This document shows positions 6,928-32,691 of a DNA stretch of 64,000 nucleotides, piece after piece. The DNA comes from Macrostomum lignano. Its lineage: Eukaryota. Position 1 is the stretch's first letter; every line of letters begins with the position of its first letter. The position numbers and the translations under genes are program-made. The notes under the pieces were generated by a model, which saw only the letters and a list, made by a program, of their open reading frames with translations, was not told where the DNA came from and made no database searches. The stretch spans positions 1 through 64,000 of the forward strand of contig NIVC01001689.1 of the NCBI GenBank assembly GCA_002269645.1, given 5' to 3'.

Positions 6928-9900
6928 TCAATCTTGACCTGCAGCAGCCCCTAAAAGCTCCGCAGTCCGCTGCTTGACCCCCAGCGCTCCGAGCCGCTGG
7001 CCGGGTTCCGGGTGCCACAGCGCTTCCAGCAGGCCGTCGGCGAGGACGCGGCAGACGGGACCGCCGGCCAGCCAGGCGTCAGCAGGCAGGGCGGGCCTGG
7101 CGCACCGCGGCCGGCACACCAGCTGGCGCATGTCATCCAGGCTGGGATTGGCTGGCGCCCACTCGGCGTAGGGCAGACTGTAGGGCCCGAGGCAGCGCTG
7201 GCCGACCTCCCACAGCACCAAGCCGAGGGCGTACAAGTCGGCCTGCTGGAGGTTCGCGAAGCTGCCGAGCGCCGGACCGCCGTCAAGGAGCTCCGGGCTC
7301 AGGTAGCGGACAGTGCCAACTCGCCTGCGGTTTCGCACAAAATCAAAGGATTAAAAACCCTTCCCGCAACTTCATGGGAAAGATATACAATTGAACTCAA
7401 TGGGATTAAAATCCCACAACGTAACTCAATGGGGATTCAACTCCCACAATGTAACTCAATGGGAATTAAAATCCCACAATGAAACTCAATGGGGATTCAA
7501 CTCCCACAATGTAACTCAATGGGGATTAAAATCCCACAATGAAACTCAATGGGGATTCAACTCCCACAATGTAACTCAATGGGAATAAAATCCCACAATG
7601 AAACTCATGGGAAAAAAATCCCACAATGTAACTCAGTGGGGATTAAAATCCCCCAATATAACTCAATGGGGATTAAAATCCCACAATGTAATTCATGGGA
7701 ATAAAATCCCACAATGTAACTCAATGGGGATTCAACTCCCACAATGTAACTCAATGGGAATAAAATCCCACAATGAAACTCAATGAGGAATAATATCCCA
7801 CAATGTAACTCAATGGGGATTCAACTCCCACAATGTAACTCAATGGGAATAAAATCCCACAATGAAACTCAATGAGGAATAATATCCCACAATGTAACTC
7901 AATGGGGATTCAACTCCCACAATGTAACTCAATGGGAATAAAATCCCACAATGAAACTCAATGAGGAATAATATCCCACAATGTAACTCAATGGGGATTC
8001 AACTCCCACAATGTAACTCAATGGGAATAAAATCCCACAATGAAACTCAATGTGGATTAAACTTTCACAATGTGACTCATGGGGATTAAACCCCGACAAT
8101 GTAACTCAAAGTGTATTATTAAACTTCCACAATGTGACTCATGGGGATTAAAATCCTAAAATGTAACTCAATGGGGATGAAAATCCCACAATCCAACATG
8201 ACAAAATAATGGGGATTAAGGCCAAAAATCAGTTCAATGAGAATTAAAATTGAAGAGGCAGACAGAGACAGACCTGTCCCCATCCCGCCGCAGCTCGTCA
8301 GTCTCCCTGACGGCCAGTCCGAAGTCCGCCAGGCAGCAGGTGAGGTCGGCCTTCACCAGAATATTATTCGATTTCACGTCGCAGTGCGCGATGCCGGGCT
8401 TAACGAAACCGGCCGAGATGAGCTCGGTGTGCAGGTGGGCCAGGCCGGTCACAATGCTGTGGCACATGCCGGCTGCCACCCGACAGCTGATGCTGTGCTC
8501 CATCAGGTAGGTCTGGCCAATGAGAATGGGGCAGAGTGAATCTCAGCTCTGAGATTATCGCTGACACAGATAATCTTACACCTGTACCGATAGAGTCTGA
8601 GACTATCACTGACACAGATAATCTCACACCTGTACCGATAGAGTCTGAGACTATCATTGACACAGATAATCTTACACCTGTACCCATAGAGTCTGAGATT
8701 ATCACTGACACGGATAATCTCACACCTGTACCGATAGAGTCTGAGATTGTCACTGACACAGATAATCTCACACCTGTACCGATAGAGTCTGAGATTATCA
8801 CTGACACGGATAATCTCCCACCTGTACCCATAGAGTCTGATATTATCACTGACACGGATAATCTCACACCTGTACCGATAGAGTCTGAGATTATCACTGA
8901 CACGGATAATCTCACACCTGTACCGATAGAGTATGAGATTATCACTGACACGGATAATCTCACACCTGTACCCATAGAGTATGAGATTATCACTTACACA
9001 GATAATCTCACACCTGTACCGATAGAGTATGAGACGATCACTGACACAGATAATCTCACACCTGTACCGATAGAGTCTGAGACTATCACTGACACAGATA
9101 ATCTTACACCTGTACCCATAGAGTCTGGGATTATCACTGACACAGATAATCTCACACCTGTACCGATAGAGTCTGAGATTGTCACTGACACAGATAATCT
9201 TACACCTGTACCCATAGAGTCTGAGACTATCACTGACACAGATAATCTTACACCTGTACCCATAGAGTCTGGGATTATCACTGACACAGAGATAATCTCA
9301 CACCTGTACCCATAGAGAATGAGATTATCACTGACACGGATAATCTCACACCTGTACCGATAGTCTGGGATTATCACTGACACGGATAATCTTACACCTG
9401 TACCCATAGAGTATGAGATTATCACTGACACAGATAACCTCACACCTGCACCGACACTATAAGGATATCAAATGACGGAGAATAGCTATGGCTATAAAGG
9501 GCGACCATCCTCAACCCCCAACGCAGCCGCAGACCTGCAGGGACCCGTTGGCATGGTAATCGGTGATCAACCACAGCTGAGTTTCCCAGCCGGCGTCCAC
9601 GTTGTCAATAGCGATGAAGCCCAGGATGCTGGGGTGCGCCAGGCCAGGCGTGGCGTAGATCTCGCCTTCCCGAGACCAGGAGGCCTCCACCCGGCTGTGA
9701 AAAATCTTCACCGCCACCGTGTCGCTGACCTCTCCGGTGCGCCACGTGCCCTGCGATGACAGACGGGAGCAATGGGATTTTGATAGACTTATGTCTGTCT
9801 GTTTTAATGTCTGTCTGTTTTAATGTCTGTCTGTCTGTTTTAATGTCTGTCTGTTTTAATGTCTGTCTGTTTTAATGTCTGTCTGTCTGTTTTAATGTCT

Positions 9901-10379
9901 GTCTGTTTTAATGTCTGTCTGTTTTAATGTCTGTCTGTCTGTTTTAATGTCTGTCCGTCTGTTTTAATGTCTGTTAGTCTGTTTTAATGTCTGTCCGTCT
10001 GTCTGTCCGTCTGTTTTAATGTCTGTCCGTCTGTTTTAATGTCTGTTAGTCTGTTTTAATGTCTGTCCGTCTGTCTGTCCGTCTGTTTTAATGTCTGTCT
10101 GTCTGTTTTAATGTCTGTCTGTTTTAATGTCTGTCTGTCTGTTTTAATGTCTGTCCGTCTGTTTTAATGTCTGTCTGTCTGTCTGTACGTATGTTTTAGT
10201 GTCTGTCTGTCTGTCTGTCCGTATGTTTTAGTGTCTGTCTGTCTGTCTGTTCGTCTGTTTTAGTGTCTGTCTGTATGTATGTCTGTCTGTCTGTATGTCT
10301 GTTTTAATGTCTGTCTGTCTGTTTTAGTGTCTGTCTGTCTTAATGTCTTAGTGTTTGTACGTCTGGCAGTCTGACTATC

Positions 10380-10430
<51 letters not shown>

Positions 10431-10433
10431 TAA

Positions 10434-10472
<39 letters not shown>

Positions 10473-13400
10473 TTGTCCGTCTGTCTCTCTTAGTGTCTGT
10501 ACATCTGTCTGTCTGTCCGGCTGTCTTAGTGACGTTAGTGTATGTCTTACGAGCGTAGAGCCTGGGCTCCAGGCCTCCATCTCTCACCCTGAAAACCTGG
10601 CCAAACCGGCCCTGCCCGACCGGGCAATCCACCGTGGTGTCCCTGGCGATGGTCCGCCTAACCAGGTGCGGATTTCCGTAGCCGCTGCTGGAACAGCCCT
10701 GCTGCTGCTGCTGCCGCCAAACCGACGCCAGCTCATGCTGATGAAGCTGACCCTCGGCCCCAGCCTCCTGCTCCTGGTGCAGCCGCTGCATCAGCACATT
10801 TTGATCTCGCACGCTGTCGGCATCGGCGGCGCCACCCCGCCGGCCTCGGAAGAGCCGCAGCCGGGCCAGCAGGCGGTTCAACTTGTCGCGCCTCGGCAGG
10901 CCGCCGCAGCACCAGCAGGCGAGGACCAGGCCGGCGGCGGCAGTGGCCAGGGCCGCTAGTCCTACGAAGCCGGCGACAGCGCTGGCGAACGCCGAGGCCG
11001 CCGTCCAGCCGCCTGGCTGCCTGGGCGGGCCGAAGCGCAGCTGGCTTAAATTGGAGAGCCGCACCACCTGCTGCTGAGCATCGATCAGCGGCATCGCCTC
11101 GGCCAGGTTGCAGAGACTGCCGTTTTTGCAACAATTTCTGCCCGGCGACAGGTGGCAAAATGAGCCAGCTAGCAGAGACACCGTGGCGTCGGACTCGGCA
11201 GATGGGGAGTCAGCAATTAACTGGCGGCGAGTCAGGCACCTGGGTGTTTTGGGGAGATTAGAGGCATGGGGAGCAGTCTGTCAGCTGGGTGTTTTGGGGA
11301 GATTAGAGGCATGGGGAGCTGTCTGTCAGCTGGGTATTTTGGGGAGATTAGATACATGGGGAGCAGTCTGTCAGCTGGGTGTTTTGGGGAGATTAGAGGC
11401 ATGGGGAAGTCTGTCCATGCTTGGGGCTCAGTAGTCAGGACTCAGCAGAAGGGGCATAACTGCCTGCTCAATGGCTGCAAGTCCTACCTACTTCAAGTAC
11501 TAGCTCAAGTAGGATGGGAAACTACATTTCTTGAAAACATTTAGGAAGCAGGTTTTACCAAAAATACATTACAGAGATAGGGGGTTATAATTTTTTTAGT
11601 ACTCAGGGTTTATCTTTTAATATGTCTTATCTTTTATATAGCTCTATTGATATGCATAAGTTTTTATTTATTTAAGATTCTTTGCTTGTTTTAAATCAGA
11701 CATCTGATTCAGTAAATCATCATATTATTTTAAGTAGCAAAGAATAAAAAACATAGGATTAATTGTCCTGGTTTTTTAAGTACTCCATGATAAAATCCCT
11801 ATTGAAAAGAGTTGCTAAATGATAGACAGCTATCCAGCACATCTAAAAAATGACTGCAGTGCAATACAATGTGACATTTGGTGCTGCGCTTGGAATCCAT
11901 GTCAAAACAGTCAAGCACAGAATGGCCTAAATGTCATAAGTTAGCAAAGTTATTTGGAATGCTTTATGTAACAATGCTGCTTATATGTGCCACCACTGCT
12001 AAAGCAATGCAAAGTGCCAAAAAGTTGCTTTATTGTCACAATGCCTCTTAGGCCCAGGTGTGCACTTGGTGACCCCTTGATATAGCCTATGTACTTTGGA
12101 GAGTGGCCCTTTAGTACATTTTTGCTAGACCCTCTATATGCATCCATGCATTCTTAGATTTTATTTTTAGTACATAGAACTAAAATAGGGAATGAAAGGA
12201 TCATAATCATTTCAATAACTTGACATTTCAGTGACAGTTATTTTGGTGACAAGCAAGTCATTTCAGTGACAAGAAAAATACCCATTGGTGATAGCCATTT
12301 TGTTTTTAAACAGTAAATTACCTTGCAAATCTTAAGGGATATCAAGCCTTAACTTTTTAATAATTTTCTGCAATGGTTGACCATTACTTTATTTAATTTT
12401 GTTTATTTACAATTCTAGAATTGCAATCTTTTGAATTGATATGTTTTCCAATCTAATTCCAATTGTGTCTAGTGAATATATATATCTACTATTCTTGTAG
12501 TTAGGCCCTAGCATTTCATGAAGATTCTCTATAGGTTTATGGTTTTTGTGTCTAAATATTCTGGGACAATTCAAAATGATCTGCACAGAAAGAAAAGCAT
12601 ATAATTAGTTTGATTTCTTTTCCTACATATACTAATCTTTTGATAGAAATTTTCAAATATAAACAAAACATGAATCTTAACAAAATAACTACAAGCTGAT
12701 ATTATTAAGCACTTTCTGTCACTAAAATGACTATAATTATAAATTCTTTATTTTTTAACAAAAACAAAGTTTGTTTATAACAAAAGCAACTTGTCACCAT
12801 AATGACTATTTATCACCAAAAAGTCTGTTACCAAAATGACTTGTCACCAAAATGACCAAAACCTAAATGAAATGACTTACTAGATAAATAAACAAAGTCC
12901 TTAAGGAAGAAGTAATATTAATTTTTACAAGTATATTAGTTTTGCAATAGTTCATACTATTATATTAAAATTTTAAATGTATAAGAAAGTTATTACTATA
13001 AAATTATTAGAAATTATAATTGTAAATATTCAAATATTTGTATATTCACTCAAAATAGACATATGTATAGAAAGAAAGAATAACAAAATTCGAAAAGACC
13101 TCATTGGTTTATGCCGGTTTCCATGCATTTCGGTGCCCGTGCTTTTCGGTGCCCGGCATTTCGGTGCCCCAGATTGCTTTTCGGTGCCTCAATTTATGAC
13201 GCCAAAATGATGATAATAAAAAAGAAATCCAATAAACGTTCAAAATGTTCGATATTCCTAATAAAAGCAGTGTTCATTTTGTTAAGCTGGCACGCTTCTT
13301 AAATTTAGAAAAATCCGGTCAATTTAATTGCATGCATTTGCTGTACAGTACGTAATCATGTAATATACAATACAATCTGGCGGCACTCAGCAAGCGTGCC

Positions 13401-14622
13401 AGTGCTATGAAGACTTAGTTAGGTAAAGTTGAAATCTATTAATGATGCTACATGTAGTTTTGATCGAAATTATAAAATGTGACAAGTCTACATGTATTTT
13501 AGTTAGTATTGATTTTTTGTATCACACGCAACCGACGATCATGTTTTGTTTCATAAAACTGCCTAGGAAATGAAGTGTGTATTATTTGATGAGCTAAAAT
13601 GATTGGACCATAATCTATAAGATTTTATTATAAGCGCATTTGGGGCATTAGTTTAAAATTTTGATGTGGATGAGACATAGTAGCAAGCGACATGAAGTTT
13701 AATCAATCATTGAGTAATTTCGAAAACCATTTTTTTGAATTAAAACACCAGGTCAGCTTAACAAAATGAATAATACCTTGTTTTTAAAGGTAAGTAAGTA
13801 AGTACTGCAAAGACAAAGCACTCACTGCTAAATTAAAAGGGCTCAATTTCTATATTCTTGTGTCCAATTCCAATGTATAATATGGGCACCAAAAAGCAAG
13901 CTGGGGCACCGAAAAGCGTGGATACTGTTTATGCCAATATATTTATTGCCAAAGTTGGGGTGGGTTCACAGTATTTCACAGTAGGGCTAAAATAAAAAAT
14001 AGTTAATAAAAGGCAAAAGAACTTACCCAAATGATACATAATTTAATGTTAGTATATTTTTGTTCCATACTTTGCAAAAATTTGAAGTTTGTTTATCATC
14101 ATGTAAGTTATTACATTTTGTGTACTGATAAAGCTGCTGATTGCAAATTGTATTTATAGCCAAGCTATTGCCATTGGCATTATAATTTAATAGGCCTATC
14201 CTTTTAACATTCATACTTTTACATATATCATTTGTAGACATATAGCATTTTGAATATTCTAAAGGCAAATTTATAGTACAGCATAGTGGTCTATTAATAA
14301 GGTGATGAAACTGCTGTTTCACATCTTCAAAACATGACTCATTTCTTTTCAAGTAAGATCCATTTTCAATCATTACACAAGAATATAACTGGTGAAACAT
14401 AATTGAAACATGCACATTACTATTCCATGCTTTGATCATATCGGATGAAATTAGATTTTGTTGACAATATGAATAGTCATTCTTAGGTTCAAAAGATTCC
14501 ATTGAAACCGGAAAATCCATAATATGAGGCGTATAAACACAACTTGATGAAGTTTGACACAAACATTCTTCACACACAAAGTACAGAATGCTAGTTATGA
14601 GAATAATTTTCGTTGAATACAT
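6928..14622 (-). CDS. TGF-beta/activin superfamily type I receptor Ser/Thr kinase (ALK4/5/7-Baboon-like L45 loop), 5 exons, 699 aa
   Basis: Exons 14622-14027, 11239-10588, 9750-9535, 8512-8274 and 7324-6928. All introns are GT-AG and phase-compatible (2100 nt total). Signal peptide, Cys-box [11 protein letters not shown] helix, GS-like [62 protein letters not shown]. Exons 2-5 are secure; joining exon 1 rests on splice phase and Cys spacing. Confidence 0.9.
7395..8225. repeat. 30-bp minisatellite (60-bp dimer) filling receptor intron 4
   Basis: TTAAAATCCCACAATGTAACTCAATGGGGA units. Confidence 0.95.
8545..9450. repeat. 48-bp minisatellite filling receptor intron 3
   Basis: GAGATTATCACTGACACAGATAATCTCACACCTGTACCGATAGAGTCT units. 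Confidence 0.95.
9790..10545. repeat. (GTCT)n microsatellite with GTTTTAAT interruptions filling receptor intron 2
   Basis: Direct periodicity. Confidence 0.95.
11240..11410. repeat. 45-bp tandem repeat x4 at the 3' end of receptor intron 1
   Basis: Units start at 11240, 11285, 11330 and 11375. Confidence 0.9.
12220..12865. mobile_element. Old foldback/MITE-like element with TTTTGGTGACAAG subterminal repeats
   Basis: TTTTGGTGACAAG...GTCATTT motifs near 12240-12270 are inverted relative to AAAATGACTTGTCACCAAAA near 12830-12855; no TSD resolved. Confidence 0.45.
13112..13920. mobile_element. Foldback/MITE-like element with TTTCGGTGCC subterminal repeats
   Basis: TTTCGGTGCC repeated at 13125-13190; inverted GGGGCACCGAAAAG at about 13902-13916. 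Confidence 0.5.
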
Positions 14623-15799
14623 AGGTACTAATTATATTATATTATAAATTAAACACATAAATAATAGGATAGGATATAAATGGATATCGGAATGATGTAA
14701 AGCCTCAACCACTCGCTGCACCTGCCTATGTGTTCCCTTTAGAAAGTGTTATTCTAAGAAACAAAGCAAGTTAAAATGTTAAAAATAAAACAAAATACTT
14801 TTATATAAGAAGTTCTAAAAAGTTCTTAATTCTAAGGATATTTATTTACTTACAGAAAAATTATCTTTTAAATTGATTTATGAGTATAATTCATTTTTAA
14901 TTTAGCTTTTTATGGCAATATTTTCATTTTTAACTCAATAATTTATTGGAAATGTTTTAAACAGTGCTCACTGCTCACTCTATTGAATTAGAAACAGCGA
15001 ATTTAGTAAAAAAACACGATATCGTGCCTTTATAACGTGCTTACTTCAAAATGCTTCTGTTATTGAATTTTGATTTTACACAATAATATTTTATTTTCCT
15101 AGCTGTAGGCTCACTAGAGGCTGTAGCGTGTAGTTCAAGATCATGGCATCATGCAAAAAAGTATTTTTTCTGTTCTGTGGTGACCAGGATGGAATTCTTG
15201 TATTTCTTAAGTCAAACGGAATTATGCAATTTTTTTATGGCACGCAAAATATTTTTATTGGTCGCATTTTTTATTTTGGTACTTAGCACGTCGCAAAATG
15301 GTAAGAACAAGTTTTTTAATGGCTTAGCTAAAATTCTAAAAAGTAATCAATAAGACAATAATGAAAAATTCATTCTAAGAAAATGTAGTGATTTGAATTT
15401 TTGTCCAAATACATATGTTAGAGAATGTTACGAGTTTCTACTTTTTATAGAATTTTTTCGAATTTTTACTTTTGTGCCTTATTTAGTTTTTACTTTTTAT
15501 TTTTTTTTCCTTTGTGATCTTAGCTAGTAGGATTATCTTTTGCAAAATCCAATATCTCAAGCGCACTTTTGCATATATTAAGAATAAGCAATTTTGTCTG
15601 AAATTCTGCGACACATTTTTTTCCGGATTTTTTGATGCAAAATCGTATTTTTTCGCGCAATTGCATAACGCGTTGTGATTTTTCTGCAAGAATTACATCC
15701 AGGTGTGGTGAGGAGATAAATATTGTGGCAATCAATGCCGCGTTGGCCTATATGTCTTGTCTAATCTTGTTAAATGGTCTTGTGACGTTGTCAGTTTAA

Positions 15800-15821
15800 G
15801 GTGGTCCCGAAAAGGGCCGTT
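15800..15821 (-). other. Second, more degenerate histone-type stem-loop (AAC GGCCCT TTTC GGGACC ACC) on the minus strand of the solo LTR
   Basis: Reverse complement of 15800-15821; same flanks as the + copy; one stem mismatch and one wobble pair. Confidence 0.55.
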
Positions 15822-16534
15822 GGACTGCTGTTCTCCATAGTCATTCAACCCTTCAGTTTCATCGTTTCAACTAAACTTTTCCATTCGTTTATTGCGACGT
15901 TTACTTGTAGTAGTGCCCAACGATTTTGTGGCAATTTCTAATTCACTGTATATTTTGCTATCCTCTCTCGCGACCGTATAAAATTGGCACGATCGATAAT
16001 TTTAAGTTCTCTCGCCAGCCAATGAAATCACTCGTGCTCGCGCTACCCCCCTCTGCGCTCTTTTATTAAACCCCCCCCGCCTGGTGGCGGCACTCCTCAC
16101 TTGTTCCTTGTTTCCTTCCCTGCTGCCTCTTAGCTGTCTTATCTGTTCGTCTGGCTGCCTCGAGCCTCCTTATTTCTCACCGTGGCCCTTCTGTCTGGGC
16201 CAGCCTGCTCACACACTTACTTGACTGTCTCACGCCACGACCGACGCCAAACTCGCCACTACGTTTCACTGCCTTCACTGTGCTCATAGCCACTGCTCAC
16301 GTCACGTCGCCATTGTGTCATTCGCCTGCCACTTGACTTCATATCCAAATTATATTCAACCCATTGTTGCAGCCGCCAGTGCCCAGAAAGCTATAGTCTG
16401 TTTATTGCCAGTAACAACCAAACTTAATACTGATATTAACAATAAAGACAACTACGGCAGTTCCTGCCTTTATCGCCAAGTGCTCCGCTACAAAATCCGC
16501 TTTACAAGAATTGACTTCAACTTATTTTGGGACT

Positions 16535-16558
16535 AAAACGGCCCTTTTAAGGGTCACC
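16535..16558 (+). other. Histone-mRNA-type 3' stem-loop motif (AAAAC GGCCCT TTTA AGGGTC ACC) inside the solo LTR
   Basis: Matches the metazoan consensus GGYYYU-UUUH-ARRRCC-ACC with one G-U pair. Confidence 0.65.
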
Positions 16559-17559
16559 GCATAGCTGGCCGCTACGCCAATAACGTGACAGTCTATAACT
16601 TGCCGTTTTTGTGCAATGGCAGGCCAACCTAGCCAATCTAACTAGTATAAATTCAGTGTTGGGCACAAATTCACAATTCCAATACTCCCATAGGCTTCCA
16701 GACAATCCGACCACAATCAAATCAGCGACGGACAATCTGGCGACAGATCTTGTATTGTCTTGATTTTACAGATTTTAGATACAAACAAAACTTTACAGGA
16801 ATGGTAGTTTTTAATTTTACATGTAGTAGTAGTAGTAGTAAGTTTGGCTCAGGCAAGAAGCCTATATGGCCAATATTTCAATGTATTTAATTGTAATTCA
16901 AGAGTAGAAAGAAATATTTATGCATAAGTACAAGTTTTGCAATAATATAGTATTTGAAAGAGCACCCAAATTTTTTCTACGAAACTTCAAACAATCTTTA
17001 ACAACTAATAAAGCAAAATTTTTTTAAGTAAAGAATTAAAAAACAAGCATTGTATGAACTTGATGTATAGCAATTTGATTGATCCCATAGGTGATATATA
17101 TAAATAAGTTGGCGTCACTAGGAGAGCGAATAGATGCTAGCAGGAAAATAGGATTTCAATACTAATCTCTAGCTTAAGCCAAAAAAAGTTTTACAATGTT
17201 AAAACGAAATGCATATAGATATTGATCAGACAATAACAAAAATCAAATGTAAGGATTATTGGCAATTATTAGGCATTGAAGATAAAAGATATTTTTTAAA
17301 GCAAATATAAGAGAAAATGATAAAAATAGAGCACTTTAAACAAGTTTTAGGTAGGCATTAAATGTTTGCAATTAGAAAATTTATGGTACAAATGAACACA
17401 TAATGGAGAAATTTCACTGGTATTTTTTAAACAAAGAGAAGCAGGAACTTAATTGCAAGGAGGTATATTTTATATTGTATCTCTTATCTTGTATCATTTT
17501 TATCATACATAGTTTTGGGTATTTAAAATAGGTCCTTCAAGATGAAGCAGTGATAGAAA

Positions 17560-18080
17560 TTTATGGTATGAAATCTGCAAAAAGATTTTCAAGTCAATCA
17601 ATATCAGATAGGAAACTATAAATCTTTTGAATTGCATTGAGGTCTTTTTTGATTTGGTGATTTTGTTTTTGTTGTTGTTATAGCCAATTTTGTAAAAGTG
17701 TTTTGGTTTTAGGCTCTCTAGACCAAAGTATTTTTTTCTAATCTCAATCAAATTGGAACACTCAGCAACAAAGTGTAGTATGTCATTTCCAGCTTTTTTA
17801 CCACACAACCTATATGATTCCTATACAAAAATTCTAGGTAAGAATTCATACTTTAACTTTAACATGGTTGTTAGAAACTTTTTGATTCTAAAGACACTGG
17901 GGAAGTAAGTTTGCAACTTGGGTCTGCAAGTCCTTTTATATTTAAGGGTATGCTTGAAATATTTTGAACAACTTTGATCCTTTAATTTCATCCCTAGCTC
18001 TTTTTCCCAATTTAGTTTTAGCTCTCTTTTTAGGATTGATTTATCTTTACTAAAACTTTGGCTAGGCCTAGGGTTCACTA
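17560..18080 (-). pseudogene. Decayed non-LTR retrotransposon ORF2 3' end
   Basis: Broken frame ...RLCGKKAGNDILHFVAECSNLIEIRKKY resembles the C-terminal CxxC...H...C motif of L2/CR1-group LINEs; an in-frame stop lies upstream. Confidence 0.5.
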
Positions 18081-19684
18081 AGGTAATGTATTCTAGGTTT
18101 ATACTTTGTAGCTTTTTTATGACTTTTGCTCATGTAGAGAATACATATAGAGAATTCACTTTAAGATGACAAATATCTTTTCTAATAAAAATTGTACATT
18201 ATGTCTATACTTCTGACAGTTTAGGATGTCATATCAAATGCATTTTAATGTAATAATGTATTTGCATATGATAAAACTAGTGTGTAGCCTTTAGTGAAAA
18301 TATAAAAGAATGCATTGATTTGATGCAGTTTCCCATTTTTAAAGCAATATGTATTATCATTATAAGAAAACAAGCTGTTGATAGTTGATCAAAATCCATG
18401 CATTTTGAACCCACTAAATTTCAATTCTCAGAACTATTTTTGCATATTCTAATAAAAAATAGTTAATAATAATAATAGCAAATATAATTATAACAATCAA
18501 AGCTCTTTTAATCTGTTTAAATAACAGTATCTATTTTACATATAATAGCTTTTTACTACAAATTGTTGCTAGATTGACTGGCACCATTTTGACTGTCGCT
18601 AGATTGTTTAATGCTGGATTGTCTTGTTGCTGGATACTGGATTGATTGGATACCTTCCTATATTACTAGCAATACCTTTTTTGGGTATCAGAATATCAGA
18701 AGACTATACTTTTTATAGTATTAGACTTTGGTAACTTTCAATACAACTTGTAAATTTTCCCAATAGTCCGATACTTTGAGCATGCAAACAATCAAAATTT
18801 CTTTGAAACAAATGAAATAAGGGCATATTTTTCATGTAAAGAAATGAATAATGATAAGTACTTCATTTTTTTGTCAATTACATTGACCAAAATAACAATA
18901 TTAGGGTAAAATAACAATTTTTTTACTTAAAACAAGTTTTTTTCTTTTTAAAATAGCCTCCACCATATATTCAAGTACCTGTTTATTGGTTAGTAATTAG
19001 TAATTATTGTTAAAATTATAATATTCAATTATTTATTTATCAATAATAAATGTACTAAATGTATCAACAATAACAATTATCATGCCCAATGCCACAAATT
19101 CTACCACATTTTCATTGTTAGTCACTGATTGGCAATTGATTTTATAATCTATAATGGTAGATATACTAGTATTACACTATAATAACATAAGAAATTAAGA
19201 GAACAATGTATAAGCAGTTAGCAATAAATAAGTAAATCTATTATTTTTGGTATATACATTGTACATATATTGGGCAAGGCCAAGTTAAGTAAAGGGAGGA
19301 GAAAGTGATGTAATTTGCATGTAAGTTTATATGTAAATGCATAGAGAATGGCAAAGCCAAGTATTGTTCAATCAGAGGTAAGGCTTTAAAGTTTGTACCT
19401 GGGCTTAGAGCAGTTGGTCTGGCTGGCTAACTAAGTACACAATAAGTACACAATAAGTCCAACCAAAGGCTGAGAGGTTGAGTATGCAAGTGTAGCAATC
19501 ATTTGACATCTGTTTGTTTTTGATTTGTTGATTTGATTTTATTTGTTTTATTGATGGTTTCTTCATTTAAAACAATGCTAAGCTTGCTTTCTTTCTTTGC
19601 CTAGAAATTTAGGAGAAGGTCTAAGAAGCTTAAATTATGCATTATATTTATTAGACATTGCTTTTTGCAAAAACTGGGTATTGG

Positions 19685-19978
19685 AATAATAATAATAATT
19701 GATTACACCTGCCCAATGGGCAGATGTGCAACCGACAGCTCAGCCACAGCTATTGCGCGGCGCATCTGAAGGCTGCGTACGGCTGTTTAGTCCAAGGACT
19801 GGGGGGTCGCCACACACACCCTCAATTACCCCAGCTAATGCTGGTACCCATTTTACAGCTGGGTAAACTGAAGCAACGCAGAGTTAAATGTCTTGCTCAA
19901 GGACACAAATTGTTGCAGAGGGATCGGGAATCGAACCCCCAACCGTCGTGAGTCCGACGCCCTAACCACTAGGCTACA
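19685..19978 (-). mobile_element. tRNA-derived CORE-type SINE
   Basis: Minus strand: A box TAGCCTAGTGG, B box GGTTCGATTCC, central GTGTCCTTGAGCAAGACATTTAAC...CTGTAAAATGGGTACC resembling the CORE domain, and an (ATT)n tail. Confidence 0.8.
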
Positions 19979-21378
19979 ACCCCTTGGAATATACTGTATT
20001 GGAATAAAGTATCATTATTAAGGTATCAACAATACTCAAATTTGGGTATTGGACTTTAAGGTATTGGTGATACTTTTTATAGAAAAGGTATTGGGGTATG
20101 GTTTTCATCAATACTTTTTTGAGTATCATGCCCAACACTGTATATATTGTGGTAAAGTCAATGTAAGTTTGCAAAATTGATGGCTATTTTGTTTTTTTTT
20201 TTTTTTTTTGACAAAATTTAGCAATAATTAAATAGATATTGTTTTTGTTTTTTTTGGGTAAGTCATAGCTAGTATAATTTCAATAGTTGTACATATATTT
20301 GTATATTCATTATATATTTCATTTTTGTTTTAAACAAATTAGGAATTTGAAGCCATTATTAGAGTTAGGCTCTAGATAATATACATGTACACCAGAATTT
20401 TCCAGCATACAAAGGGATCTGCTATACACTATTGGCATACAAATTGGCATATAGAGGGGCCTAGCATACCCCTTGGTGTACAGATTGGCATACAAAGATT
20501 TGCCAAGATAGCAAGAGAACCAAAGTTCCAAGTCCCAATCAATATACAGTACTTAGTCAGCATACAAAAATGATTAAGTTCAACTTTGGTATAGTCTCTA
20601 TATACAGCTATATTTTAATCAAAAAGAGTAGCTCCCAGACCTTACAAAATAAATTTTAATTATTAAAATTTTGTGATCCTTAAGTATTGGTTGTAATTTT
20701 TAATTTTTGTTTTGGTATGTTTTTGTTTGAAATTAAAGTCTGTTGGTATTTGAGCCAGGGAAGCAATTTTTATTCTAGCATATACCAGTACATGATCCTG
20801 ACCCTGGCATTAGAAGACTTTGTTTTTATTCTTTTTTATTTACAATCTTTTCTCATTGACTTGCACTTAGTAAAATTTATTATTAAATGAATCTATTAAC
20901 AATCCATAGCTAAGAATAGGCCTCTAATATCTGACTGTTTTTCATTCCCTTATTCTTAAGCAGAGACTACCCATAGGGGCAATTATAGATATATTAGGCA
21001 TAGAGAAAATTATTTCCATTGATTCTGTTAACTAATTTGATTAACCCAAAATTAAATACAATCCAAAATAAACCAACTTGAATTTGGATTTCAAATTGTG
21101 TTATAGACCTCATTTTAAATGTTCCTTCAAGATACTAAGTCATGATATAATATAAAATGGTTTCTAAAAATAAAAGTTGTTAGATAAAAATTTTGCTATG
21201 CCTTTGGTTTACATTTTTCTTGGTCATTGGTCATTACAATATTCAATCATGTGTTTCGAGGTTGAAGAAGGCCCTATGTATTTGTAAAAAAATGAACATC
21301 TATTAAAGCTATGCTATTTGTAAGCCTTCAAACATGAATCACACTTTTATTGAATGCTTATAACATTTCAGAGCAGCC

Positions 21379-23918
21379 ATGACACAAGGCAGCTACACAC
21401 TGGCAGGTGCTGTAGATAGCAGTGACAAACAGCAGGAGGAACTGCTTGAGATCGATCTAATTCGACATCCTGGAAAGCCACTGGGCATTGAGTTCCTGTT
21501 TGGCCATCTGAGCCTACCGCGTGGTCCCACCAGCGGCCTCTTTGTACGACGGGTTGACAAGCAGACCGCTGGAAGTGACAGCGGAGATGCCAGCTTGCTT
21601 GAGGAGGGCGACTTTGTCCTGTCCGCTAATGGCCAGGTAAGTAAAATTTGTCTGCATTGCCTCGTTTGTAGGCTGCACACTCAGCATGCCTACCTAAAAT
21701 TAGGGAATTAGGGAGGGCAGCACACAGCCACCTGAAGAATTAGGGAGGGCAGCTCAGCCACCTGAAGAATCAGGGAGGGCAGCTCAGCCACCTGAAGAAT
21801 CAGGGAGGGCAGCTCAGCCACCTGAAGAATCAGGGAGGGCAGCTCAGCCACCTGAAGAATTAGGGAGGGCAGCTCAGCCACCTGAAGAATCAGGGAGGGC
21901 AGCTCAGCCACCTGAAGACTCAGGGAGGGCAGCACACAGCCACCTGAAGAATCAGGGAGGGCAGCACACAGCCACCTGAAGAATCAGGGAGGGCAGCACA
22001 GCCACCTGAACAATCAGGGAGGGGAGCACACAGCCACCTGAAGAATCAGGGAGGGCAGCACAGCCACCTGAACAATCAGGGAGGGCAGCACACAGCCACC
22101 TGAACAATCAGGGAGGGCAGCACACAGCCACCTGAAGAATCAGGGAGAGCAGCACAGCCACCTGAACAATCAGGGAGGGCAGCACAGCCACCTGAACAAT
22201 CAGGGAGGGCAGCACACAGTCACCTGAAGACTGCAAGTTCACAGCCGAATTCCCCGGGCAGGAGCTCCGCACAGCCGCGACAGAGGCGGCCGCACTGGAG
22301 GCGATCCGCAAGGCCGGTCGGCAGTGCCGGCTTCGAGTCCTGCGCAGCGACTTTGTCCGCTCCGAGTTTCTCAACTGCCTCGTCCGCTCTCTCAACGGCG
22401 GCGGCGTCATCGGCGGGTCTCGCCGCGGACCTTCAGCAGTTAATGACGACGTCGCGGTGCATCAGCGGCGTCCGCAGCAGCAACGACAGCGCCGAGCAGC
22501 TGCTGAATCAGCTTCGCCGACTCGATCCCCCCACCAGGCGCCGCCGCCGCCGACTCAGCAGCAGCCGCAGTCGATGCCAGCCCTGTCATCGGGTGCCAGA
22601 GTTCCGCTGGCGAAGCTGGAGCTGGCGCTGGCCCGGTTGGGCTACCGGTTCACCGCTGGCGAGCTGGCCGAGCTCAGGAATTCCGTTGGCGGCGGCGGCA
22701 GCGGCAGCGTGCCGTTCGGTCAGTTCGTGGTCGCCGTCAGCGACATCATCGGCAGGCGGCGGGGTGCTGGCAACCAGCTCGAAATTGAGGAGGCTGTGGT
22801 TGTTCGTAAGTCGCTGCGAGACTTTGCCACTTCTTGATATTCTGATATTTTTAAATGTGATTACCATCCTGTCACTCAATCACCATCTGATGCCCCTAAT
22901 TATCACGTAAAATCTTAGAAAATCATCTAACACCATTGATAATCATCTGACACCATTGATAATCATCTGACACCATTGATAATCATCTGACACCATTGAT
23001 AATCATCTGACACCATTGATAATCATCTGACACCATTGATAATCATCTGACACCATTGATAATCATCTGACACCATTGATAATCATCTGACACCATTGAT
23101 AATCATCTGACACCATTGATAATCATCTGACACCATTGATAATCATCTGATCATCGTTAGTTACCTTTACTAACGACTGTCCGCCGCCCGCCTCAGCAGC
23201 CGCAGCAGCGGCCACCTCAGCGGCGGCCCCACCTTCGCAGCGGCACCGTCAATCCGGCGGCTTTGAAGCTCGCGACAAACTGGACGCCGTCGACAGCGGC
23301 GCGGCGAAGCAACGGCCGTTTGTCGCTGCTACGTCGACATCGACTGGCTCGCAGACTGCGCTGACAGGCCCGGCCCAGGACGCTGCAGTCGCCGCCGCAA
23401 AGTCTGAGGCCCGCGAACTTGCCGACCAGTGCGCCGCTCTGCAGCGCCGCCTGGACGACGCTGAGGCAGCCAACGAGCGCGACAGGCGACGTCTGGCGGT
23501 GCTGGCTGGCGAGCTGCGGAAATCCGGCCGGCATAGCAACCGGCTAGCAACGGCGCTGCAGGCTACGCTGGACCTGCTGGGCCGCCTGGCAAACCTCGAC
23601 CAGGCCGAGCGGGCCGAGGCCGACGCCGTTGCCGAGCGGGCCGCTGAGTTGCTAAGCAACGAAGGCGTTGATGGCAACGACGACCTGCCGCCAGGTTGGG
23701 AGCCGGCGCAGCTGCGGCCAGGTGGTGCCGAGGCCGCCGCCGCCGTCTTTGCCAACCATGCCGAAGGTCGGGTAGCTCGGCAGCCGCCGGCAGCCGGAAA
23801 TTCCAAACGGGCCGAACAGGAGGCGGAACCGGAAGTCGACGGGCCGAAGCGGCTGCAGCGCTACCGGATGGACATTCTGGACCGCAACGGCGTGCCGGTC
23901 AGGCAGATCGCGCTGTGA
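21379..23918 (+). CDS. STXBP4: Syntaxin-binding protein 4 (Synip)-like: PDZ, EF-hand-like, coiled coil, degenerate WW
   Basis: Exons 21379-21636, 22262-22805 and 23197-23918, phase-compatible, with GTAAGT donors and a TACTAAC branch point at 23168. The PDZ (KPLGIEF...SANGQ-ELRTAA...AIRKAGRQCRLRVLR), EF-like region, coiled coil and LPPGWE...NH...PP follow the known STXBP4 domain order. Confidence 0.75.
21708..22230. repeat. 30-bp minisatellite in STXBP4-like intron 1
   Basis: CAGGGAGGGCAGCTCAGCCACCTGAAGAAT units. Confidence 0.95.
22920..23152. repeat. 20-bp minisatellite in STXBP4-like intron 2
   Basis: AATCATCTGACACCATTGAT, near-perfect units. Confidence 0.95.
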
Positions 23919-29953: not shown

Positions 29954-30985
29954 CTAGAGAGGTGCCGACAGCACACGGTTGACCATTGGGCGCAGGAGAC
30001 GGAGGCAGCCTCCCGACTGCGGCAGGTAACGTGAAACGGCGCCGCTGCGCCAGCCGCCCAGCCGCTTGATCTGCTCCACGTCGAGGCCGCTGTCGAACGC
30101 CAGACAGGCGCCACCCCGTCGTAGAGAGTGGCCTGAGAAAGCTGTCGCCGCCCAACCTGCATCTGCCAGAGCCCGAGCGAGGCGGCGATCGAATTGACGC
30201 GATGTCATCGGGCACCAGCTTCCGGCGATGTGGACGCAAAACAGCCGAGTGAGCGCCGGCGCAGACCGCAGCTTGTTAGTCTGAAAATGCTGCCGCAGGG
30301 CTTGGACAGGACAAAGTGGGTGGCTTCCGAGTACTGGCAGCACCGCCTCCTGGTAGTCTTGTCCGCATTGGTTGGTCTTCGATTGTCGAACTCGGAGTCT
30401 CCAGCACTGACCATCGGCCTGAGCGTCGCTGACGAGAATGGAGTGGCGCCCGCAGACATTTGCTTTCCTGAGAAGTGCCCAGAAGCAGCAGAGCACGGCG
30501 GCCCAAAAGGCGGCGTCTGCAGGGTCTCTTGGGTTCACCTGGTTTGCCAATGAAAGCAGAACCGCCGGGGTGATGGGGTCTTTCTGCTTGACTGAATGGC
30601 GGCTTGTCCGTTTGGCGCTTTTAACTGCCAGATCGATCAGGCCGGACTTGGTGATGTCGGGGAGTTGCGCCAGCTTGAAGCTCCAGCTGATGGCCGCCAG
30701 GTGACCACCGAGGCTACCGGGTGCCACGCCGCGCTTAGCCAGGCGTCGCACATACTCGACCAGGTGCACCGGGGACGCCGCTAGTGGCTGAACACCTTCG
30801 AGGTTGCAGAAGCGCTGCCACTGTTCGACGTTTGAAGCGTACGATGCCCTCGTACTAGGAGCCCAGGCGTCGGCGAGGAAGCGAAGGAGCGGCCCGGGTA
30901 GGCGGGAGGCAGGAGGCGCCGGACCTGCAAAAGCAAAAGGGAGGCGGAGGCAGGGCAGAGCGCGTGGCGCGAGATGCAGCAGGAT
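29954..30985 (-). CDS. Tyrosine recombinase of the retroelement
   Basis: Frame open from 30985. N-terminal AWAPSTRASYASNVEQWQRFC, LLRKAN (R), SKTNQ (K), HSLRRGG, GGW, SRYL (Y). No in-frame ATG before the catalytic region. Confidence 0.9.
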   Translation of the reverse strand: MLLHLAPRALPCLRLPFAFAGPAPPASRLPGPLLRFLADAWAPSTRASYASNVEQWQRFCNLEGVQPLAASPVHLVEYVRRLAKRGVAPGSLGGHLAAISWSFKLAQLPDITKSGLIDLAVKSAKRTSRHSVKQKDPITPAVLLSLANQVNPRDPADAAFWAAVLCCFWALLRKANVCGRHSILVSDAQADGQCWRLRVRQSKTNQCGQDYQEAVLPVLGSHPLCPVQALRQHFQTNKLRSAPALTRLFCVHIAGSWCPMTSRQFDRRLARALADAGWAATAFSGHSLRRGGACLAFDSGLDVEQIKRLGGWRSGAVSRYLPQSGGCLRLLRPMVNRVLSAPL

Positions 30986-32691
30986 TCAGCAGCTAAATCA
31001 TGCAGGCTACGGTAGAAGCGGAGAAAGAAATTCTGCGCCCCGCTTCTAGAAGCAAGGCGAGAGGCCGGGTCCGCCAGGACCTGGAAGGCGCCTGGAACGT
31101 GAAAGGCCCGCAGCCGCAGACCCCACGCGTCGCAGGCAAGCGACAGCGTGTGCAGGAGCCGGTTGACGTCGTTACATGGCGAGCTGAGCTTGTTCAGCGC
31201 ACCGACAGCCGCCGAGCTGTCGCTGTACACGACGATGTCCGCGCCGGCGAAGCGGCCCGGGGCCGCGAGGATGCTGAGGACAGGCGTGATGGTCTCCTTG
31301 ACGTTGATGTGGGCCGAAGCAAAACGGCCACCAGCGTCGTTCTTCCAGTTGATGTAGAGCCAGTCGGACTTATTGGCCTCCCGAACAATGCAGGCACCAC
31401 CCGAGTTACAGGCGTCAGTCTCGATGACGATCCTTCGAGCGTAGCGAGGCCAGATGGGCGCGCAGCCAACGGACTGAAGGCTTCTCCTCCACCAGTGCAG
31501 CAACTCGGTGAGGTGCGGGGCCAGCCGCAATTTGTCACCAGGTCTAGTCGCCCGGCTCGCCAGCATCAGTAGAGGGCGGATGGAAGCTCGGCCTTTCCTG
31601 GTCACGCTGCTCACCCAGGACAGCTTGCCGCAGATCCGCTGAAGGTCGCGCTTGCTGATGGCACCGCGTCGATGCAAGCAGCTCCCAAGTGCGTCTTCGA
31701 GTGCACTGAGCTTGGCCGGTGGGATGCTCAGCGTCCCCGACTCCGTGTCAATCAGGACGCCCAGGAAAACCGTGCGCCGCGACGGCCCGCTAGACTTCTT
31801 TTCGTTGATGGTAAAACCGAGGCTCGTCGCCAGGCTCCTCAAGTTCTCGTAAGCCTCGACACAGGCCTCGTAGGTGCTCCCGGCCACAGCGAAGTCGTCG
31901 AGGTAGCCAACGCAGGTGAACCCGCGCCGTTGCATCATGCGCACCACCGCCTTAGACAGCCTGTTAAAATGGTACACCGAGGCCGCAGCGCCGAAGCTCA
32001 GCCGGGTGTCGACCAGGTAGGTAGGCTCGCTGTCGCCGCTAAATTGCCATTTGATGCCCAGAGCGTCGAGAGAAGAAGGATGAACACCTACTGAGCGATA
32101 CGCCTCCTTAAGATCGATCTTGGCCGTGAAGTCACCGGGCTTGAGTTGTGAGCAGAGGCCGCTAACCGTCTCAAACTTAATCTTGTGGTCTGCGATAAAG
32201 TGGTCGTTGACCGCACAGCCTTCCGGACGACTGCAGTCGTGGATGATACGGACTCCACCGTCCTCTTTCGGGATGGCACCAAGCGCGGAGATCTTGCACG
32301 GACGTCGGCTGACAGACACATACCGCCCTCTGGCGATCTCACGCTGCAATTGCTCTTCAACCAACGTCTTGTACTCAATGGCGGACGAGTAGTTCTCAAC
32401 TTCGGAAGGCTTAAAATCTGTTTCAGTAGTGAGCGCGAAGCCGTTTTGGACTCCGTAAATTAAAAAAGGCCCGTCGGGGTCGCCGTCCAGCTCCTTCGCC
32501 CAGGCATTTGCGTCAAGGGAGCCACTCGGATTGAAATTGATGTCGCGAATGGAGTAAAAACTTGGAATTAAAACTTGCGGCTGCCAGCTTGCCGGATCCA
32601 CTGGAGCCGCGGCTATTCGTTTTTTACCACGTGTTGCGTCTCGGCGTGGTCCGAGCGCAAGCAGACCCGGCACGCATGCGTGTACTTGCAA
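30781..32691 (-). CDS. Reverse transcriptase-RNase H of the retroelement
   Basis: RIIHDCS, KIDLKEAY, LSFG, YLDD; RNase H motifs IETDAC, HINVKE, YSDS, ADPASR; uninterrupted. Confidence 0.93.
   Translation of the reverse strand: MQVHACVPGLLALGPRRDATRGKKRIAAAPVDPASWQPQVLIPSFYSIRDINFNPSGSLDANAWAKELDGDPDGPFLIYGVQNGFALTTETDFKPSEVENYSSAIEYKTLVEEQLQREIARGRYVSVSRRPCKISALGAIPKEDGGVRIIHDCSRPEGCAVNDHFIADHKIKFETVSGLCSQLKPGDFTAKIDLKEAYRSVGVHPSSLDALGIKWQFSGDSEPTYLVDTRLSFGAAASVYHFNRLSKAVVRMMQRRGFTCVGYLDDFAVAGSTYEACVEAYENLRSLATSLGFTINEKKSSGPSRRTVFLGVLIDTESGTLSIPPAKLSALEDALGSCLHRRGAISKRDLQRICGKLSWVSSVTRKGRASIRPLLMLASRATRPGDKLRLAPHLTELLHWWRRSLQSVGCAPIWPRYARRIVIETDACNSGGACIVREANKSDWLYINWKNDAGGRFASAHINVKETITPVLSILAAPGRFAGADIVVYSDSSAAVGALNKLSSPCNDVNRLLHTLSLACDAWGLRLRAFHVPGAFQVLADPASRLASRSGAQNFFLRFYRSLHDLAAESCCISRHALCPASASLLLLQVRRLLPPAYPGRSFASSPTPGLLVRGHRTLQTSNSGSASATSKVFSH

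Follow-up and report, generated by a model that had tools for sequence, protein, structure and literature searches.

A predicted type I TGF-beta-family receptor of Macrostomum lignano with an enlarged, cysteine-rich ectodomain

Across animals, type I receptors in the TGF-beta (transforming growth factor beta) family bind their ligand through one small three-finger domain, and the constancy of this single domain underlies structural models of ligand–receptor pairing. Does a receptor gene on the minus strand of contig NIVC01001689.1 of the flatworm Macrostomum lignano depart from this rule? The original prediction, made for the 64,000-nucleotide stretch that we call the window (positions 1 to 64,000 of this contig), described a type I receptor with an apparently doubled ectodomain. 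We find that the ectodomain is unusually long and includes a conserved extra Cys-rich region, under selection and more than twice the usual size, with the GS region and kinase kept; this part of the prediction stands, and the identification of the extra region as a second three-finger module is not supported. As a whole, the explanation that we prefer (the gene, its receptor class and a single composite ectodomain) is moderately probable, an assessment that reflects its weaker part, the composite ectodomain, and not the gene model.

Gene model and receptor class

The gene begins at a minus-strand ATG at position 14622, which opens a 199-codon open reading frame (ORF) with many cysteines. Exon 1 (14027..14622; like all exons described here, on the minus strand) has 596 nt, that is, 198 codons plus the 2 nt GG, and ends in TTTGG, followed from 14026 by the donor GTAAGT. 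Intron 1 (11240..14026; 2787 nt, phase 2) closes with the acceptor CCCAG at 11244-11240, and the first base of exon 2 is the G at 11239, so that GG and G form Gly199 across the junction and the next codon, TGC, is Cys200. The exon, its donor and the in-frame join are all found at the positions originally given for them. Exons 3 to 5 were located by reading the three minus-strand frames downstream, with GT-AG borders, and the complete five-exon model has GT-AG introns, a coding sequence of 2100 nt and a product of 699 amino acids (aa).

Exon 1 supplies the start Met and a signal-like N-terminus, followed by the N-terminal Cys block and half of the membrane-proximal block, the first, up to ..NYVSFG. 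The putative signal peptide (aa 1-22, 14557..14622) is hydrophobic in translation and aligns with the hydrophobic N-termini of two relatives described below, P0005 and L004. The N-terminal Cys-rich block (aa 28-134, 14221..14541), which aligns with the paralogue group, carries the conserved F..L.N.PLC(C). Exon 2 (10588..11239) encodes C200 and C227 and, at aa 235-243 (11107-11133), the Cys box CCKNGSLCN. It continues with the transmembrane helix (aa 283-307, 10915-10989) and the juxtamembrane region, then the GS region (aa 382-399, 10639-10692) and the start of the kinase. We count 243 residues from Met1 to the last Asn of the Cys box, close to the predicted figure of about 245. The kinase N-lobe lies in exon 3 (9535..9750), with VAVK at 9700-9717 and the L45-loop region at 9577-9612. 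Exon 4 (8274..8512) holds the catalytic loop (aa 529-538, 8363-8392), which reads HCD for HRD, and ADFGLAV (8309-8329), and the C-lobe, with GTVRYLSPE..., is encoded by exon 5 (6928..7324), which also includes the stop codon.

The GS region and kinase bear out the assignment to type I receptors: among PDB entries, the best match is TGFBR1 (E 1.6e-78), followed by BMPR1B (6.7e-74) and ACVR1 (~1e-69), with type II receptors at 1e-50 or weaker. The GS region lies directly N-terminal to the kinase and aligns with SGSGSGLPLLVQRTIART of TGFBR1. Its motif is degenerate, SSSGYG versus SGSGSG, and for P0001, a near-identical M. lignano protein introduced below, the Pfam domains on record are PF07714 and PF00069, with PF08515 not listed. 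The Kyte-Doolittle maximum falls at aa 286-309 and the only other hydrophobic stretch is the N-terminus, which indicates a single transmembrane helix. Judged from the kinase and the L45 region, the product is a type I TGF-beta-family receptor closest to the TGFBR1/activin branch (ALK4/5/7, Baboon). Like TGFBR1/ALK5, ALK4/7 and Baboon, it is a single-pass protein with a Cys box of the form CC-x5-CN before the transmembrane helix and a GS region followed by a Ser/Thr kinase; its L45 region resembles ADNKDNGTWTQ of ALK5 in the alignment, and insect TGF-beta receptor type-1 proteins share ~47% identity with it in the kinase. We regard the five-exon gene model and the receptor class as highly probable.

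Exon 1 in sister copies, paralogues and transcripts

Is exon 1 truly part of this gene? A protein search with exons 2-5 returned P0001 (BOX15_Mlig032202g1 of M. lignano, PAA93745.1, 696 aa) at 98% identity over the whole query, and the N-terminus of P0001 is the exon 1 ORF, joined as read here (..NYVSFG|CLTRRQ..). A second GenBank model, P0076 (BOX15_Mlig014156g1, PAA69461.1, 697 aa), has the same architecture and junction. Full-length identity of the window model is 96.4% with P0001 and 96.7% with P0076; the locus is one of at least three near-identical M. lignano copies of this type I receptor. Because the Mlig_3_7 GenBank annotation goes back to RNA-seq, through a genome-guided transcriptome made from these data with StringTie/TACO and complemented by a mapped de novo assembly, and not to ab initio prediction, the junction in the sister copies rests on transcript evidence (PMC5730564). 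The gene models are already in GenBank/UniProt as “hypothetical protein” or “receptor protein serine/threonine kinase”; what is new here is the reading of the ectodomain, not the gene.

More distant relatives carry the same region. The paralogue group BOX15_Mlig028938 (P0005, P0080, P0004 and P0012; 822-823 aa) is ~47% identical to the window product in the kinase versus 22% in the ectodomain (~47-50% and 22-25% if the contigs L004 and L003, described below, are included), and the ectodomains align with that of the window over their whole length (BLASTP E 2e-7 for P0005 and 6e-6 for L004). Landmarks common to the window and paralogue ectodomains are C.Y.P near the N-terminus, WN, F..L.N.PLC, two close Cys, L.Y...G and NCC....CNL, and the Cys box CCKNGSLCN is invariant in all relatives. 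At L002, a genomic locus of the paralogue, exon 1 encodes aa 1-174 and ends in ..LHYYTAG before a 9.5-kb intron; this end is homologous to ..LNYVSFG of the window, placing an intron at the same position in a paralogue of 22% identity.

Two intronless contigs from the Logan assemblies extend the comparison. L004 (SRR30276804) holds an 815-aa ORF that begins with MPAKIVIPIF.., upstream of the start chosen by the gene caller, and reads in a single frame from the N-terminal block over ..HYYTTGC.. and the Cys box to the transmembrane helix and the kinase. L003 (SRR28338163) is truncated at its 5' end, is likewise intronless and spans the homologous junction. From similarity, we infer that both come from macrostomid flatworms. 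The predicted exon 1/exon 2 join is thus recovered in the GenBank models PAA93745 and PAA69461, in the intron position of the paralogue and in intronless L004, and the search for relatives of the long ectodomain was successful in the P0005/P0080 group, L004 and L003. Being common to the P0005/L004 paralogue group, the extra Cys-rich region is old. The BOX15_Mlig028938 group, with L004 and L003, resembles the window gene in its homologous long ectodomain, the intron position and a compositional switch described below, but differs in having HRD and SGSG, 12 or 14 Cys and a longer juxtamembrane region.

Comparison of near-identical copies shows how exon 1 evolves. L001 (NIVC01000022.1, the locus of P0001) is collinear with the window at ~80-94% identity, including introns and minisatellites, and all five exons map in both with the same acceptor and donor flanks. 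Exon 1 is 96.1% identical where aligned, versus 81% for the 480 nt upstream and 67% for the adjacent intron, and its only indels are of 3 and 6 nt, so the frame is kept. The ratio of nonsynonymous to synonymous substitution rates (dN/dS; Nei-Gojobori, window versus L001) stands at 0.37 in exon 1 and 0.30 in the N-terminal block, compared with 0.22 in exons 2-5 and 0.09 in the kinase, and the ectodomain cysteines show 0 differences between the two copies. Exon 1 is coding and under purifying selection, laxer than that on the kinase.

Chance does not account for the ORF. In AT-rich DNA, here with 29-30% G+C around exon 1, stop codons are frequent, and in 300 shuffles of positions 12001-21000 the longest ATG-initiated ORF reached at most 148 aa (median 76 aa), versus 199 aa for the real one; the second-longest real ORF of this interval has 77 aa. 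Since it is above all 300 shuffle maxima, the 199-aa ORF is no chance product.

The composition of exon 1 invites another explanation, namely that the exon is foreign to the receptor, a separate small secreted-protein gene or a transposon ORF that lies in frame by coincidence. Exon 1 has 29% G+C and a G+C content at third codon positions (GC3) of 0.25, versus 63-71% and 0.65-0.83 in exons 2-5 (67% G+C in exon 2), and the switch falls exactly at intron 1. The window is AT-rich throughout from 12 to 21 kb, and retrotransposon-like ORF fragments lie in the same AT-rich block. The exon 1 ORF on its own, like the ectodomain alignment, gave 0 matches in a word-indexed protein search, but we treat these negatives as tool misses and not as evidence, because P0001 and P0076 in the same database carry a ~93%-identical N-terminus; for AT-rich-encoded or Cys-rich queries, an empty result of this search is not to be relied on. 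A foreign origin is at odds with the RNA-seq-based models of the two other copies, which join exon 1 identically, with the intron position kept in the paralogue, and with the intronless contigs from other samples, which hold block and kinase in one ORF; in the L004 transcript GC3 switches from 0.34 to 0.82 at the homologous point, and a milder AT-to-GC switch is also present at L002. Moreover, exon 2 by itself would have neither start codon nor signal peptide and would miss the first half of the ectodomain. On these comparisons, the view that exon 1 is part of another gene is already contradicted, and we consider it extremely improbable. The switch itself could be due to isochore-like domains, biased gene conversion or a separate origin of exon 1 and, being sharp and conserved, offers a convenient case for the study of compositional heterogeneity within a gene.

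With exon 1 accepted as part of the gene, the differences between the copies and their paralogues raise the possibility of a degenerating or decoy-like regulatory copy, in which the ectodomain would reflect relaxed constraint after gene or genome duplication and not a new binding function. The window product, P0001 and P0076 have HCD for HRD in the catalytic loop together with the degenerate GS motif, whereas the paralogue group keeps HRD and SGSG; the ectodomain evolves faster than the kinase (dN/dS 0.30-0.37 versus 0.09), and many recent duplicates are known in M. lignano (PMC5730564). Yet the kinase value of 0.09 signals strong purifying selection, the catalytic Lys and Asp and the DFG motif are all present, and three copies have an intact ORF. 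Since the HRD-bearing paralogues also have the long ectodomain, it predates the HCD and GS changes. We judge the decoy-like copy distinctly unlikely.

Architecture of the ectodomain

What, then, does the long ectodomain consist of? In the TGFBR1/activin branch the ectodomain has ~100 residues and 10 Cys, in contrast to ~220 mature residues and 16 Cys in the window product, in which only the second half of a three-finger domain is recognisable and which also differs from that branch in its HCD and SSSGYG motifs and in having no PF01064 recorded. The eight Cys of the N-terminal block (C28, C53, C82, C97, C114, C115, C126 and C134) are spaced 24, 28, 14, 16, 0, 10 and 7 residues apart, with no CxC start and no CC-x5-CN end, and this framework is not that of an Activin_recp or Ly6/uPAR (LU) domain, which has CxC or C-x2-C at its N-terminal side, 4-5 disulfides in some 80-100 aa and CC-x(4-5)-CN at its C-terminal end. 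The 14-residue stretch that was said to end the first Cys block is found as aa 113-126, and the pattern given for the second block, C..C..C..GC..FC..CC..CN, corresponds to C160, C170, C183, G199-C200, F226-C227, C235-C236 and C242-N243.

Taken at face value, the window ectodomain could be two tandem three-finger modules of Activin_recp or LU type, the N-terminal block being an old duplicate diverged past recognition, and its halves do contain 8 + 8 Cys. The relatives depart from this symmetry, with 8 + 6 in L004 and 7 + 5 in P0005. C170 and C183 occur only in the lineage of the window gene, inside a lineage-specific insertion, so the 8 + 8 arrangement is not family-wide. The window product, P0001 and L004 have both C115, the second C of PLCC, and C200, which belongs to the GC at the exon junction, and P0005 has neither; that is, the two covary over the supposed boundary between the modules. 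Small disulfide-rich extracellular modules are a trait that the window ectodomain has in common with the three-finger/Ly6-uPAR and Activin_recp domains, and its membrane-proximal end keeps the CC-x5-CN knot, but the N-terminal block has neither their Cys spacing nor a detectable likeness to their profiles.

The profile comparisons are as follows. When 1.84 billion representative proteins were searched exhaustively with an HMMER profile of the ectodomains, P0001, P0006 and P0003 were the only matches, and no protein from Echinococcus or Schistosoma taxa was among them. Sequence and profile searches of the PDB with the ectodomain or the N-terminal block gave nothing significant, the best profile match (E 0.13) being to an unrelated protein, and no PF01064 match is recorded for any member of the group. 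Local hhalign between the N-terminal block and 17 canonical type I ectodomains, a set taken from search matches, gave P 0.7, and hhalign of this block against the C-terminal block found no internal repeat, the sole match being ten residues deliberately put in both. Control comparisons between canonical subgroup pairs matched at 94-96% probability in two of three cases and failed in the third, which makes the negative results meaningful, not conclusive. The membrane-proximal block gave a weak match to the canonical set (P 0.0056, probability 6.5%, 32 columns), confined to YVSFGC...FC...CC....CN, that is, to the three-finger domain's second half, aligned in the register expected; canonical C2, C3 and C4 have no clear counterparts in the ectodomain.

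Structure prediction adds little to the negative profile result for the N-terminal block. Mean AlphaFold2 confidence, as the predicted local distance difference test score (pLDDT), was 32.9 for the mature ectodomain (6 rows) and 35.0 for the N-terminal block (4 rows), which is too low for use. In both runs mature residues 38-87 are modelled as a helix, a beta-hairpin and a second helix, with a pLDDT of only ~45-58, and these low-confidence helices, in the only moderately scored segment, are at most a hint against an all-beta N-terminal block of the three-finger kind. The doubled ectodomain of the original prediction is not borne out by these tests: the absence of profile likeness, the deviating Cys spacing, the lineage-specific C170 and C183 and the covarying C115 and C200 all run against it, and no duplication is detectable within the ectodomain at the level of sequence. 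Three-finger domains are short and quick to diverge, a circumstance favourable to the tandem modules, as are the missed control pair and the poor models; overall we consider them unlikely.

Counts of the conserved cysteines point instead to connections between the blocks. Of the family-conserved Cys, 7 precede residue 150 and 5 follow it; with the boundary at 123 the counts are 5 and 7. As each side then holds an odd number, at least one disulfide would cross any boundary drawn between C114 and C160, if all are oxidised. The N-terminal and membrane-proximal blocks are therefore probably disulfide-linked and not independent modules, and the presence or absence of both Cys together across lineages suggests C115-C200 as a candidate disulfide pair.

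Inter-block disulfides would equally be expected if the whole ectodomain were one canonical three-finger domain expanded by long loop insertions, with the N-terminal Cys being C1-C5 spread apart. A permissive hhalign run sets C126/C134 on C1-C3, C160 on C5 and C200 on C6 (P 0.025, not significant). Even so, ~100 residues upstream, with 5-6 conserved Cys (C28-C115), would still be without a canonical counterpart, canonical C4 is missing, and the lack of any PF01064 record throughout the group fits this reading poorly. We regard the expanded single domain as rather unlikely. It, the tandem pair and the decoy-like copy are each less well supported than a composite ectodomain.

The reading that we favour, to which we give somewhat better than even chances, is a single composite, non-duplicated ectodomain. 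Exon 1 provides the putative signal peptide, a ~135-aa Cys-rich region peculiar, as far as known, to this receptor group, and half of the membrane-proximal block, the first; exon 2 opens at the conserved GC and contributes the Cys-box knot together with the transmembrane helix and GS region. The remnant of the canonical fold would be its second half, an aromatic strand followed by GC...C...CC-x5-CN, and the N-terminal region would replace or heavily remodel fingers 1-2. By analogy with the family, a dimeric ligand of TGF-beta/activin type and a type II receptor would expose the GS region (SSSGYG) to phosphorylation, and the kinase would then phosphorylate an R-Smad of the Smad2/3 type; this signalling route and the ligand class are inferred from family membership and the ALK5-like L45 region.

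Several observations weigh against this reading. The exact 699-aa product of the window is absent from the protein collection searched, so the window is either a third copy or derived from another assembly, and the transcript support for the junction belongs to the sister copies P0001 and P0076 and not to the window copy itself. The HRD-to-HCD change and the degenerate GS motif bear on whether the kinase is fully regulated. The low AlphaFold2 pLDDT leaves room for an N-terminal block that is three-finger-like, and the fast divergence of three-finger domains, together with the one in three failed hhalign controls, makes the negative profile results weak. The covariation of C115 and C200 amounts to a single loss event among three lineages, and the disulfide parity presumes that all ectodomain Cys are oxidised and that C17, C20 and C22 are removed with the signal peptide.

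Other flatworm receptors provide a point of reference. Echinococcus EmTR1/3/4 and Schistosoma SmRK1 are GS-box type I receptors with a Cys box, some of them of 721-772 aa, and are described as having the canonical number of 7 Cys ahead of the Cys box and as lacking a canonical signal peptide (PMC10073696). Beyond this paper on Echinococcus receptors, our literature search for Macrostomum TGF-beta receptors or extended type I ectodomains of flatworms found nothing relevant. A more specific proposal, that fingers 1-2 were replaced in macrostomids by a new, partly helical 8-Cys module stapled to the Cys-box knot, is a tentative possibility that we consider doubtful. If true, a type I receptor of the TGF-beta family would have, in two paralogue groups and several species, a new architecture for binding ligand or co-receptor, and altered pairing with the ligand or the type II receptor would be implied. 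Should the extra region take part in binding, these genes would be a natural experiment in rebuilding ligand or co-receptor specificity. RNA interference and transgenesis exist for M. lignano, so the question is testable.

Introns and neighbouring features of the window

Minisatellite arrays largely fill introns 1-4 of the receptor gene (7387-8192, 8548-9454, 9792-10526 and 11240-11415), with units of ~30, 48, 12-20 and 45 bp, and occur in the same places in L001; the 45-bp tandem array at 11240-11415 adjoins the intron 1 acceptor. Intron 1 also contains an 813-bp element (13116-13928) whose terminal inverted repeats carry GGCACCGAAAAGC motifs, with 33-nt arms that are 91% complementary. Collinear L001 lacks this element, of which neither the window nor the compared loci contain another copy; its appearance is that of a DNA transposon insertion particular to the window copy and resembling a miniature inverted-repeat transposable element. 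A 212-bp single-copy block in the same intron (11859-12070) is 94% identical between the window and L001, versus 83-88% for the surrounding intron; it may act as a regulatory element or represent a small exon or RNA missing from the annotation.

Two other locations for the 5' part of the receptor gene were considered and set aside. An alternative upstream exon inside intron 1 is unnecessary, because the RNA-based models already supply exon 1, and of the minus-strand ORFs at 11950-12147, 12407-12586 and 11232-11402 (the last in the tandem repeat), none is Cys-rich. A 5' end beyond ~21 kb is unlikely because a plus-strand gene begins near 21379; this opposite-strand gene, with ORF pieces at 21379-23918, bounds the possible 5' region of the receptor. 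Judged by eye, its G+C-rich ORF pieces include a PDZ-like segment (..GKPLGIEF..GLFVRRV..) and a WW-like one (..LPPGWE..).

Probable mobile-element sequences lie further upstream of the receptor gene. On the minus strand, 29954-32691 holds adjacent ORFs of 636 aa and 271 aa, the first reverse transcriptase/RNase H-like and the second with a tyrosine-recombinase-like ..GHSLRRGGA.., which, judged by eye, looks like a DIRS-like retroelement arrangement. In the AT-rich block, a 101-aa minus-strand ORF (17503-17808) contains a CxxC..H..C-type motif (CGKKAGNDILHFVAEC); such motifs occur at the C-terminus of non-LTR (long terminal repeat) retrotransposon ORF2 proteins, and the ORF is probably a decayed fragment of a long interspersed nuclear element.

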